Shown here: positions 54,001 to 57,445 of the stretch, one piece after another
Layout of the letters: every line of letters begins with the position of its first letter
How positions within the stretch are numbered: position 1 is the stretch's first letter
Assembly (NCBI RefSeq): GCF_026571515.1
Contig: NW_026853943.1
Location: forward strand, 62,001-126,000
Direction: 5' to 3'
Source: Ruditapes philippinarum
Taxonomy: Eukaryota
DNA length: 64,000 nucleotides
Position numbers and translations under genes: made by a program
The notes under the pieces: generated by a model
Seen by the model: only the letters and a program-made list of their open reading frames with translations
Told to the model about the DNA's origin: nothing
The model's database searches: none

Positions 54001-57000
54001 TTTCATATAACAGTTTTTTATATTTCATATTGTACGGCCATAAGATTAACTTGAAATAAAAAGTACATGATAAAAAATTTTCTAGCTAACTGTGTTAATT
54101 AAAACTTTAATACCAACCAGTTTTCCTATTTCTATTTACGTTACAAGATTTAAACTTCTGCTATTTTGACCTTTCTAGTCTCCAAAAACAACTTTCTCAA
54201 TTTCGACGAGAAACACTGATATCTAAATTTAAATTAATTCAAATTATGCCTCTGTTTAATGGCTTCTCTTTAAATTTCGTTCAATAAATATTCATATAAA
54301 TGCAAACCAAATGTGCACATATGACAAGTGTATATATACATTTCATACTCAATCAGACTTATGTTAAAGGCTATATGACTAACGTTCATAATGTTTTGCA
54401 TTCATTCATTTATATGTAGTTTGAACAAAGAGATAAAGGCTTGATATATTTATTATTTTCATATTTACCTGAAGAAGTTAGTCCAGGGAAAAAGTAAAAC
54501 TCTTTCTTCAGTGTGTAATGTGTTGAAGCTGCAAATCTATGGATGCTTGCATTTTGTAACATCTGTTAAGGTAAATCAGCGAATAGATCAGAACATATGA
54601 ATTCAATTAACACAAATATATGGTAAAAGTTAATTTTATTTCTACGATTAAACAGATAATAATACTGTGGTAACTACAATAGGAAAGGGTATCATTTATT
54701 TGGGCTTTTTCAGTAACACAAAAATCTTTGAAGCGGCTCCTACATTAATAGTTCAAACGGTGAAACGAATTTTAAAGAAAACGAAGGTGTAGGAAATATC
54801 AGTTCTAAGTGCTACGTACCAGTTTCCAAATGTTTTGTGCAGACAGCTCATGTGCAAACTCACATAGAATAAATATGTAGAACATTATTCCATTAAATCC
54901 TTGAAAAGAATATATGAGAATGATGATAATAAAAATAAAAATATGTTGAACTCTTTGAATTGTACAAAGTAAGTACTTAGTTTCACAAATGAATACAATG
55001 GAACCTTTAAAGAAAGAACATAACTGTTAAAAGTGTTGCAGGCTCAGTACACGACGCTCAGTTTGACTGGGTTTAATTATGGACGATAGTGATAATACAA
55101 TATATTGTGCAATTCACCTAACAATGGATTATCATAATATGCAGAACAAAACATGACGTTTAATGAAGAATAAAGAAACATCATAAAATATGGCATAGTT
55201 ATGGCAAATAATCACTTAAACTTAATCCACAAATACGTTAATGATTACATTAGCCGGAAGTAAAAATTAAAAGTTTAGTCTGTCCTTTTCAAATTATGTT
55301 TTTCATTATATACGGTAATGTTAAATTGATTTATATAAAGCATTACGCTTATCCAGAAAGCAGGGAAGTTTTGAAGTAAGATTTTGACTTTCAAAACGGC
55401 TGCTTATTTAGAAAAAAGTTTTAACCGTAACAAATGATTGATACCTAAACATATTATTTTTATTTGAACAAGTATGAAGATGTTGCTAAAGTTTATTTTG
55501 AAAGACCATTTTACACTCACCTGTCGATACCGACAAAAAGTCTGGGTCTTGGTTCTTTTTTCCAACCTCCTCTATCTGTCTAACTATACTATCGTCACCT
55601 ATGTTACATATACAACATTTTAATTTAAGATAAACACCGAAACGAAGATTTTTTTCTAAGTGGGCAATTTATTACTGTAACAGCTTTTTATTCATTACAA
55701 GCCTATGAAAATATTTTGTTTTGAATGAAGTCTTCACTACTAGGTTATAACAAGTCTTAAAGACGCAAACAGTATTTCATTCAAAATGCACAACCGATTA
55801 ATTAAAATATATTACTGTATTAGTATAGATTGTTGAAGTTGCTATGTCTTCGATAAATCAAACAAATGACGTTGCCCTTAATATGGCATTCATATAAAAA
55901 CTGTGGTAGATTTATTATCACACTTTAAAAGGGAGCGGTGTTCTGGTGGTTTTCTTATTTCCCCTTCTCAACATAAGAATCGGCTACGAGCAAGACCATG
56001 TTTGACATAAGTAATATTCAGTTATATTGAATTCAGGAAGAATATCCGTGAGTTGTCAAAATATGCTGCAAACTTTCATCACAATCAAGCCAAGCAAAAT
56101 ACGTTTTTGATTAAATTAAATAAGTCTCTTTTTTTCTTTTCAAAAATGATCGAAGGAACGAGGCAAATAAAATGTTATTGATATACTATAATGCAGAATT
56201 CTCACCTATTACGTATATAAGCTTAGGCTTTCCTCTCAGTAGTGGTGCATTTTCGTCATTTAAAGTTGTTGGTATGTAGTCAAATTCGAAGTCGTCTGGT
56301 GTTCCATATATTATCACGACAAATGAATCTACGTATCTGTTGTCTTCATTGTGTGCTTCCGAATTGATAATACCACGAATATCCTAATGTAATTCATGAA
56401 TTAAATTATTGATACTTAGAGTTAAGCTATTGAATCCTGCATCAATAAACTGTACAATGAAAATCCTAAGGTGAAATTAAATATTGCAATTTAAGTTATC
56501 AAATTAATTCAACAATTACATTAACAAATGATTCTCTTAAAATCTAGAGAATCATACCAAAGAAGATAATTATTTATAAGCATTCAAATAACAATAATAA
56601 ATTTGAAGTATTATTATTCAAGTTGCATGCTCACTTTTTCAGATTTCCCTGTTTCAATTCTAACGGTGTAGTTCATCTGCGTGAAAAGATCTTTCAGCAA
56701 TCGCAAGGCTTGATAACTTGCATTTGACAACAGGAGAACCCTGCCTCTTACATACCGTGTAATTGGATAAACCTGTAAAAAAATAACTTTATGAATTTAT
56801 TTTAATGATACATAAATCTAATAAAAACAAATATAAATTAAGATTTACTTGAATTATACAAAACATCGAATTTAATTACATAAACGACAAAAGTTCAGAT
56901 AAAATTAGAGACATTCAAGGGGAATGACTCCGTAGGTCATATTAACATTGTTATAATATTTTCAATATTTTTTTATCCACAGTACCGTATCCTTCTCATT

Positions 57001-57445
57001 CATTTGTTCTGCCATTAAACTATCCGGGGCACAATGGGTTATTGTGATTCTTCGTTCTGTATGTACCCATTGATCAAAAGCTAGATCTGTCAAATTAAAT
57101 GAAAAACAACATTATTTAACAACAATATAAACATTGTTTGAAGAAATTACCACTTTAACAGTATCAGGTATCACCAAACGCTTGGAATAAATTAAAACAG
57201 GGTTATATAAGTATAAAAATCATTTTATAACTACATGTTATTCAATCGCTTCAGAAAATATAATATCGTAATGACCCAGCCCCAATCCGTGAAAAAATCA
57301 TTTACATGGATACGCCCCTGGTTTATATAAAATAATTGCAAGTTACTGTATACTGTACAACATTTATTTTAATATACTAACCGAGATCCTCCATGTTTAT
57401 AGAGGTCCCATCAAGCTTTGTCATTTCGTTGTCAATATCCATCAT
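48014..57445 (-). CDS. Pseudocaspase-Roc-COR-death domain protein, paralog B (about 1128 aa, 16 coding exons)
   Basis: Exons 57445-57382, 57086-56986, 56772-56635, 56383-56206, 55598-55521, 54899-54820, 54562-54469, 53963-53712, 53529-53210, 51764-51653, 51296-51105, 50714-50608, 50426-49128, 49014-48975, 48674-48550, 48220-48014; 3387 nt; 13 of 16 exons are the same length as in paralog A. Motifs VYPITRYVRGRVLLLSN, DSFVVIIYG, NAPLLRGKPKLIYVIGDD, TLKKEFYFFPG, GLYGAGKTS, WDFAGQ, GTHGDK, then COR and death domain. Confidence 0.9.
52010..53075 (-). mobile_element. Helentron/HINE-like intronic element with about 150-170 bp tandem units and (GACG/GACT)n microsatellite
   Basis: Repeats of ctgccatc(t/c)a(c/t)ccatatttcaagtttcataaaa and gccatagcaacca; gacggacggactgactgacagacg at about 52802. 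Confidence 0.6.

Follow-up and report, generated by a model that had tools for sequence, protein, structure and literature searches.

A predicted non-catalytic caspase domain at the head of paralogous Roc-COR-death-domain genes in Ruditapes philippinarum

Two paralogous genes, A and B, lie on the minus strand of a 64,000-nucleotide stretch of Ruditapes philippinarum DNA (assembly GCF_026571515.1, contig NW_026853943.1, positions 62,001 to 126,000 of the forward strand; this whole stretch is called the window and its own coordinates are used), and each encodes a caspase-like domain, here called the pseudocaspase, in front of a Roc-COR (Roco) module. The window is eukaryotic, with G+C of about 31% across it. 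We located both copies through stop-free stretches and a tblastn search of the window with the gene B exons. The multi-exon gene B extends from 57445 to approximately 48017, and its paralog, gene A, from 43410 to approximately 32700. The encoded order is a conserved leader of about 55 residues, the pseudocaspase, a linker of about 25 residues, Roc, COR and a probable C-terminal death domain, distributed over the following features.

E0 of gene B, 57382 to 57445, minus strand: first coding exon, ATG at 57445 (21 codons and one nucleotide)
E0 of gene A, 43410-43350, minus strand: short first coding exon, ATG at 43410
E1, gene B 57086-56986 and gene A 43014-42914, minus strand, 101 nucleotides: conserved N-terminal extension FDxWVHT...ITHC ahead of the core
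E2, gene B 56772-56635 and gene A 42734-42597, minus strand, 138 nucleotides: beta1, alpha1 and beta2, without the Arg-bearing L1 loop
E3, gene B 56383-56206 and gene A 42346-42169, minus strand, 178 nucleotides: alpha2, beta3 (VVIIYG in B, VVIIFG in A; no His), alpha3 and beta4 (GKPKLIYVI in B)
E4, gene B 55598-55521 and gene A 41904-41827, minus strand, 78 nucleotides: G-DDS in the QACRG region, short linker and start of beta5 (DFLSVST in B)
E5, gene B 54899-54820 and gene A 40817-40738, minus strand, 80 nucleotides: helix alpha4 (GFNGIMFYIFILCEFAHEL... in B), with the L3 loop (Arg341/GSWF region) deleted
E6, gene B 54562-54469 and gene A 40038-39945, minus strand, 94 nucleotides: alpha5 and the C-terminal beta6 motif (TLKKEFYFFPGL in B), which is the dimer-edge strand of caspases
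E7 of gene B, 53712 to 53963, minus strand: linker and Roc P-loop (GLYGAGKTS), matched weakly by Pfam Roc/Arf when searched as a single exon
Rest of gene B, 48017 to 53529, minus strand: acidic/Ser-rich insert, Roc core (DFAGQ; THGD), COR, death domain and stop, from the tblastn exon map
COR exon of gene B, 50447-49119, minus strand: 1.3 kb
Death-domain exons of gene B, 48711-48547 and 48220-48017, minus strand
Roc-COR-death part of gene A, 32700 to 38253, minus strand: E7 at 38253-38002, COR exon at about 35135-33801 and the death-domain exons; the lower bound is approximate

Exons E1-E6 are equal in length in the two genes (101/138/178/78/80/94 nucleotides), their borders are all AG...GT and their frames are open. 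The nucleotide alignment of A and B shows similarity of 76-91% that starts and stops exactly at these AG/GT borders, the introns being unalignable. The first coding exon of gene A is present twice, at 44294-44356 and 43350-43410 (MDIADIITKLDGTP(I/K)NMYDL), and the two copies sit in a local duplication of about 730 bp with 95% identity (43554-44283 versus 44500-45226); the second copy could be an alternative first exon or belong to a duplicated promoter. Downstream of gene A, on the minus strand, the stretch 30509-30589 resembles pseudocaspase exon E5 (63% over 27 residues, E 2e-5) and may be a relic exon.

Transcripts of gene B exist and agree with its modelled splicing. RNA-derived contigs from two independent studies, placed on 53100-57900, skip exactly the predicted gene B introns, with joints at 57382|57086, 56986|56772, 56635|56383, 56206|55598, 55521|54899, 54820|54562, 54469|53963 and 53712|53529, and every skipped stretch is GT..AG on the minus strand. 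The first of these joints supports exon E0 of gene B, as do a transcript contig that reaches 57632 and the same N-terminus in a 223-residue protein derived from a public transcript contig (P0024), which has the junctions of E0-E5 in unchanged order and is close to gene B in sequence over these exons. Of the words sampled from the 3.8-kb stretch, 0.2-0.3 occurred in RNA runs sharing one species label, approximately the exonic fraction of the stretch, and the raw RNA-Seq reads of a third study fell mostly on exons. Because the RNA contigs join the gene B exons exactly at the predicted borders, a missed exon that supplies a His/Cys dyad is excluded for the transcripts seen.

Since single exons of the window gave no caspase match in Pfam, we demonstrated the caspase homology through full-length relatives. 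A six-frame search of the whole genome with Peptidase_C14 gave no match on the contig carrying A and B and 73 exon matches elsewhere. Exon E3 alone found 32 weak matches among PDB sequences, 30 of them to caspase-4, -1 or -11 (E 0.2), aligned at the stretch running into the active-site Cys. A protein search by words with one exon yielded, within its length window, fragments only. We built a profile of E3 from A, B, a third paralog (C, described below) and two fragments; among 1.84 billion representatives it picked out two long proteins, and a later word search named these and a third. The natural full-length relatives obtained are from Sinanodonta woodiana (P0012, 1019 residues) and Mya arenaria (P0023, 1132 residues, and P0014, 921 residues). 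Nine bacterial or repeat proteins from the representative search (P0011, an MBG-repeat protein, and P0015-P0022) were set aside as low-complexity, each with several short matched stretches.

The Sinanodonta protein scores 25.5 bits against Peptidase_C14 (cut-off 21.4; E 1.2e-5), in addition to Roc and COR-A, and PF00656 stands in its precomputed Pfam list; the Mya homologue scores 13.6 bits against the same cut-off of 21.4. With the N-terminal 240 residues of P0012, phmmer found 141 PDB sequences, the matches listed being all caspases (best E 2.3e-8), and hmmsearch with a two-sequence profile found 129 PDB sequences, the matches listed again being caspases (best E 7.5e-9) and one alignment extending to the C-terminal ...LYFFP. 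The hhalign comparison with a fish CARD-caspase (fish caspase a, P0025) gave 97.6% probability and E 4.5e-12 over 192 columns and reached the C-terminus, where TLTKHFYFFPGL stands against TLTKEFYFFPGL; gene B exon E6 aligns to this fish caspase C-terminus. In a protein language-model look-up, the ten nearest clusters were all caspase.

We modelled the Mya domain twice with AlphaFold, the second time from a cleaner alignment with the window exons as separate rows. The first model had a mean predicted local distance difference test score (pLDDT) of 59.6, was good in the p20-like half only, and matched procaspase-3 at Z 13.0 and c-FLIP(L) at Z 12.8. The second reached a mean pLDDT of 71.2 and a predicted template modelling score of 0.71, with 80-95 in the p20-like half and 50-70 from beta5 to alpha5; its elements follow the order b1-a1-b2-a2-b3-a3-b4-(helical linker)-b5-a4-a5, which is canonical for caspases except for b6. 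Foldseek placed only caspases at the top for this model (caspase-11, -4, -3 and CED-3; E 1.2e-8, template modelling score 0.64-0.69). In an unbiased VIA-align search of 48,161 representative chains, the protease-like domain of c-FLIP(L) ranked first (3h13_A, Z 13.9, 168/187 residues aligned, root-mean-square deviation 3.5), followed by Sf-caspase-1, CED-3, caspase-3, -4, -8, -9 and Dronc (Z 12.6-13.5), metacaspases, MALT1 and legumain (Z 10-11.5), Raptor (Z 9.1) and separase (Z 8.2).

The N-terminal domain has the caspase fold and, on the sequence evidence from its relatives, is a true member of the caspase family; superposition, hhalign and, for the Sinanodonta protein, Pfam agree on the fold that the preliminary description of this DNA, made from the letters alone, had read from the motifs. 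The caspase-2/9-type affinity proposed there gained no support, as the best matches spread over caspase-3/6/7, -8, -4/-11, -1, CED-3 and c-FLIP at near-equal scores. Because c-FLIP(L) and the caspases tie within one Z unit, no caspase sub-family can be named. The core of approximately 186-187 residues is shorter than the 208 modelled residues of the c-FLIP(L) domain in 3h13 and the roughly 250 of active caspases, which agrees with the earlier suggestion of a fold more stripped than c-FLIP.

No His or Cys stands at the catalytic positions in A, B, C, Mya or Sinanodonta, in any alignment. The translations read VVIIYG (B) or VVIIFG (A) at the strand where SHG is expected and KPKLIY(V/A)I followed, across an intron, by G-DDS at the KPKxxxxQACRG position; LLL(S/A)N passes directly into ASYQAL, and STGFNGI(M/I)FY and KKEFYFFPG are both present. 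By HMMER and hhalign, the gap at the His motif, which includes SHG, is 9 residues relative to caspase-3-like sequences and 15 relative to the caspase-1-like fish sequence; against the caspase-3 type, IYGT pairs with the VYGT/IFGT strand that comes after the His loop. The gap at the Cys is about 21 residues and takes QACRG and much of the linker; the inter-subunit linker is short. MAFFT moves the register by 1-2 residues, so the exact register is ambiguous. Small deletion, rather than substitution, is favoured by these alignments as the way in which the His and Cys motifs were probably lost.

The substrate loops are reduced as well. Relative to a real caspase, gaps of 11 residues fall in L1 (after beta1, with the S1 Arg) and L3 (before alpha4, with the second Arg and GSWF), and a gap of 5 residues in L4 (before beta6). 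All segments that form the Asp-specific S1 pocket (Arg in L1, Gln before the Cys and Arg in L3) fall in gaps, of 11, about 21 and 11 residues, respectively. The preliminary description was therefore right about the loss of both catalytic residues, about the reduced L1 and Arg/GSWF loops and about the open frames and identical exon lengths, and all motif strings that it quoted are present in the translations. Its reading of IIYG/IIFG and IGDDS as substitutions held for the loss itself and probably not for its form: the profile alignments place the His and Cys motifs in short deletions, not at the Tyr or the Asp, and the deletion around the His motif had been missed.

We compared A, B, C, P0024, Mya and Sinanodonta exon by exon on one frame. 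No Cys column is conserved among these six; Sinanodonta has Thr or His at the two positions where Cys is most frequent, and exon E4 of gene B has no Cys in its translation on the family frame. The invariant His are those of the N-terminal WVHT, of FAHEL (also His in the fish caspase) and of alpha5. A relocated His/Cys dyad was rejected for want of a conserved Cys column, and the location of the invariant His also makes it unlikely; neither a missed exon nor a relocated position, the two sources named in the preliminary description, was found to supply one. The same dead state recurs in paralog C (VVVIYG), in Mya (VIVYG, IIGDDT) and in Sinanodonta (FVIYG, VIGNDI), which excludes chance. The absence of His and Cys, together with the RNA joints that exclude a missed exon in gene B, indicates a caspase homologue that is not an active member of the family, and the alignments support the prediction that the domain is non-catalytic.

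Ahead of the core, Pfam found no CARD or DED prodomain in the window exons, in Sinanodonta or in Mya. The leader (FDxWVHTxR...ITHC...DS, with E1 at 57086-56986 and 43014-42914) contains an invariant His, has no family match and is modelled with low confidence. Behind the core, Pfam detected Roc (5.8e-10) and COR-A (1.7e-15) on single window exons, identifying a Roco protein, and the Roc motifs G1 (GAGKT), G3 (DFAGQ) and G4 (THGD) are intact by translation. A long acidic, Ser-rich insert, presumably disordered, splits Roc between its P-loop/switch I and DFAGQ parts (about 53529-51630 in B, 37805-36398 in A) and is also found in the Mya protein (residues approximately 323-464). The Death profile gave E 0.075 on a window exon, the two exons being searched separately, and 22.5 bits against a cut-off of 22.6 on the Mya homologue. 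In databases the relatives are named 'PATS1-like', 'uncharacterized' or 'protein kinase', so that the pseudocaspase is in practice unannotated.

The pseudocaspase is under purifying selection, as the preliminary description had supposed, and is as constrained as the Roc core. We summed Nei-Gojobori counts over the complete codons of E1-E6 in A versus B and obtained an omega (the ratio of nonsynonymous to synonymous divergence, dN/dS) of 0.13, with dS 0.87 and dN 0.117; the bootstrap range was 0.08-0.21 and no replicate reached 1. The other parts gave the following values:

Roc core exons: omega 0.08-0.11, dS 0.57-0.67
Acidic insert in Roc: omega 0.42, dS 0.77
COR: omega 0.20, dS 0.16
First death-domain exon: omega 0.29, dS 0.17
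Second death-domain exon: omega 0.22, dS 0.35

Gene conversion of the 3' halves of the two genes is suggested by the low dS of COR and of the first death-domain exon and by a block of 86% identity over 2.7 kb that includes intron sequence (47831-50439 in B, 32514-35172 in A). Paralog C lies outside the window, about 17 kb off, on the plus strand at contig positions 141140-153216 (loci L003, L005 and L006); it has the same pseudocaspase-Roc-COR-death layout with 46-66% identity per exon, and its catalytic residues are also lost. The pseudocaspase is conserved in two other bivalve orders, and because Mya and Sinanodonta share the dead state, the loss predates the A/B duplication and probably also the divergence of the bivalve lineages concerned.

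Binding, and not proteolysis, is the most likely function of a dead domain that is transcribed and conserved and that precedes Roc-COR and a death domain in the same protein. Caspase domains work as dimers via beta6/alpha5, and Roco proteins cycle between monomer and dimer with their nucleotide state. The beta6 motif (K-E/D-F-Y/F-F-F-P) is among the best-conserved stretches of the bivalve family, and in c-FLIP(L) the same beta6/alpha5 surface pairs with procaspase-8 (PMC7586951). We give roughly even credence to the proposal that the pseudocaspase is a putative non-catalytic binding head whose pairing is gated by the Roc-COR switch and whose position is set by the death domain, through which the protein would join death-fold signalling complexes. 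Most likely the head would use the caspase mode of pairing, through its beta6/alpha5 edge, either with its counterpart in a Roc-COR dimer that depends on the nucleotide state or with the protease domain of a genuine procaspase, as c-FLIP(L) pairs with procaspase-8.

Upstream of gene B, two identical palindromic kappaB-like sites (GGGAAATTCCC) were detected at 57781-57791 and 57811-57821, 30 bp apart; the gene B transcript contig starts 150-190 bp downstream of them. The kappaB consensus has one other match in the 64-kb window, compared with approximately 0.9 expected by shuffling, and none upstream of gene A. As motif matches, the sites would fit an immune or cell-death setting.

Several points weigh against the proposed binding head. 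Pfam gave no caspase match on single exons of the window, the structural and profile evidence comes from orthologues and paralogs of other species, and the model is that of the Mya homologue and not of the window's own protein. The last 20 residues of that model (the beta6 region, with the putatively intact dimer edge) have pLDDT below 50 and no modelled strand. Finally, c-FLIP(L) keeps loops that help to activate caspase-8, and by this comparison a loop-less core may fail at the task.

Other readings of the head were weighed on the same data. We consider rather unlikely a GTP-gated analogue of c-FLIP, in which the nucleotide state would decide whether the loop-less pseudocaspase is offered to a true procaspase while the death domain anchors the protein in a receptor complex. 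An intramolecular lid, with the pseudocaspase packed on its own Roc-COR and keeping the GTPase or the death domain off, would be structural or autoinhibitory with no outside partner and seems doubtful to us. N-terminal domains of other Roco and STAND proteins do fold back on the switch, the pseudocaspase adjoins the Roc P-loop across a conserved linker of about 25 residues and is constrained to the same degree as the Roc core, and a C-terminal strand that is poorly modelled alone would be expected if a partner surface were needed; the retained dimer-edge motif is nevertheless explained as well by intermolecular pairing, and our results favour an internal partner no more than an external one. 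It is quite improbable that the dead core is an integrated decoy, which would mimic a host caspase and bait pathogen factors, with Roc-COR sensing the hit and the death domain signalling it. Such a role would suit the layout of head, NTPase switch and death-fold adaptor, which is like that of immune sensors, the tandem gene cluster with divergent paralogs and the kappaB-like sites, and several of the top structural neighbours are caspases complexed with bacterial effectors (OspC3, CopC), which shows only that such effectors exist. The active-site loops recognised by most caspase inhibitors and effectors are, however, deleted, and an omega of 0.13 does not point to diversifying selection, which is usual for baits.

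Little room is left for the two readings in which the head would be a protease or no functional domain at all. We regard a cryptic protease with relocated catalytic residues as very improbable: the three invariant His columns (WVHT, FAHEL and alpha5) would speak for it, but there is no conserved Cys column, the S1 pocket loops are missing and the RNA contains no extra exon. Least credible of all is a decaying relic or an artefact of the gene model, to which the failure of single exons to reach any Pfam threshold might point; the frames are open with identical exon lengths, spliced transcripts occur in two studies and two further bivalve orders have kept the domain, and decay to a pseudogene is refuted by the omega of 0.13 at dS 0.87 together with the spliced transcripts.

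To our knowledge pseudo-caspases are rare, and c-FLIP(L) has been called the only human one. This protein decides between apoptosis, necroptosis and survival. The bivalve domain resembles c-FLIP(L) (CFLAR), its top match in the fold search, in being a caspase fold without the His/Cys dyad, which in c-FLIP(L) serves as regulatory partner of a true caspase (PMC7586951). In c-FLIP(L), Arg and Tyr replace His and Cys and the loops are kept at full length, whereas in the bivalve domain the motifs and L1, L3 and L4 are deleted; c-FLIP(L) is recruited by tandem DEDs, whereas the bivalve protein lacks both DED and CARD and continues into Roc-COR and a death domain. With Z scores tied within 1, the pseudocaspase is no closer to c-FLIP than to caspases.

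The arrangement of Roc-COR followed by a C-terminal death domain is shared with DAPK1 and other Roco-death proteins, but in DAPK1 Roc is preceded by a kinase, ankyrin repeats and a calmodulin site, while here the pseudocaspase is the sole N-terminal module and Roc carries a long acidic insert. TIR-Roc-COR-Death proteins are known from Aplysia (PMC9334734). These mollusc proteins too place an immune or cell-death domain in front of a Roc-COR(-Death) chassis, the head being TIR there and a dead caspase here. In oyster, the active sites of a clustered 'caspase-3/7-like' group are degenerate; most members lack the conserved His, and often only a p20 part is present (PMC7836458). Its members were described as stand-alone caspase-like genes and by that description would differ from the fusion found here. 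C. elegans CSP-2/CSP-3 and the mosquito decoy caspases are non-catalytic homologues that bind an active paralog; they differ in being small stand-alone proteins with no fusion to a GTPase switch or a death domain. In Raptor, likewise, an N-terminal caspase-fold module belongs to a large signalling scaffold and does not serve as a protease, although at Z 9.1 it is a far more distant clan-CD relative. Pseudo-caspases, Roc-COR-death proteins, mollusc TIR-Roc-COR-Death proteins and degenerate oyster caspase clusters are thus already known, and the dead caspase head would be the new element; full-text searches of the literature turned up no account of a Roco protein with a caspase-like head.

The window contains further features. 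On the minus strand at 3944-5784, a gene ends in a death domain (Pfam Death, 24 bits, above the cut-off), and the open stretch of 353 residues before this domain has no Pfam match; this gene was not found by tblastn with the Mya pseudocaspase-Roco protein. A single open frame of 417 residues at 22862-24112 (minus strand) has a signal-like start, a Lipase_3 match (E 1e-35) and a weak PSI repeat match (16.8 bits, cut-off 23.1). A run of N occupies 61545-61973. Elsewhere in the genome, at least 73 exon-level Peptidase_C14 matches were detected (for instance, C14592:14067-14366, C1718:39471-41576 and C12577:60920-63239), some inside unusually long open frames (586-750 residues) and some in tandem groups, from which we infer a large and varied caspase repertoire.

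Taken together, the pseudocaspase illustrates how much a caspase core can lose and yet be kept by selection, under a Roc-COR switch and beside a death domain. If the core does pair with a real caspase, it would represent a new logic of caspase-activation control. Were the GTP-gated analogue of c-FLIP true, a G-protein switch would be coupled directly to caspase activation, which is not known in model animals, and this coupling would be old enough to be common to the unionid, myid and R. philippinarum lineages. The family would also provide a handle on the poorly understood expansions of Roco and apoptosis genes in bivalves.

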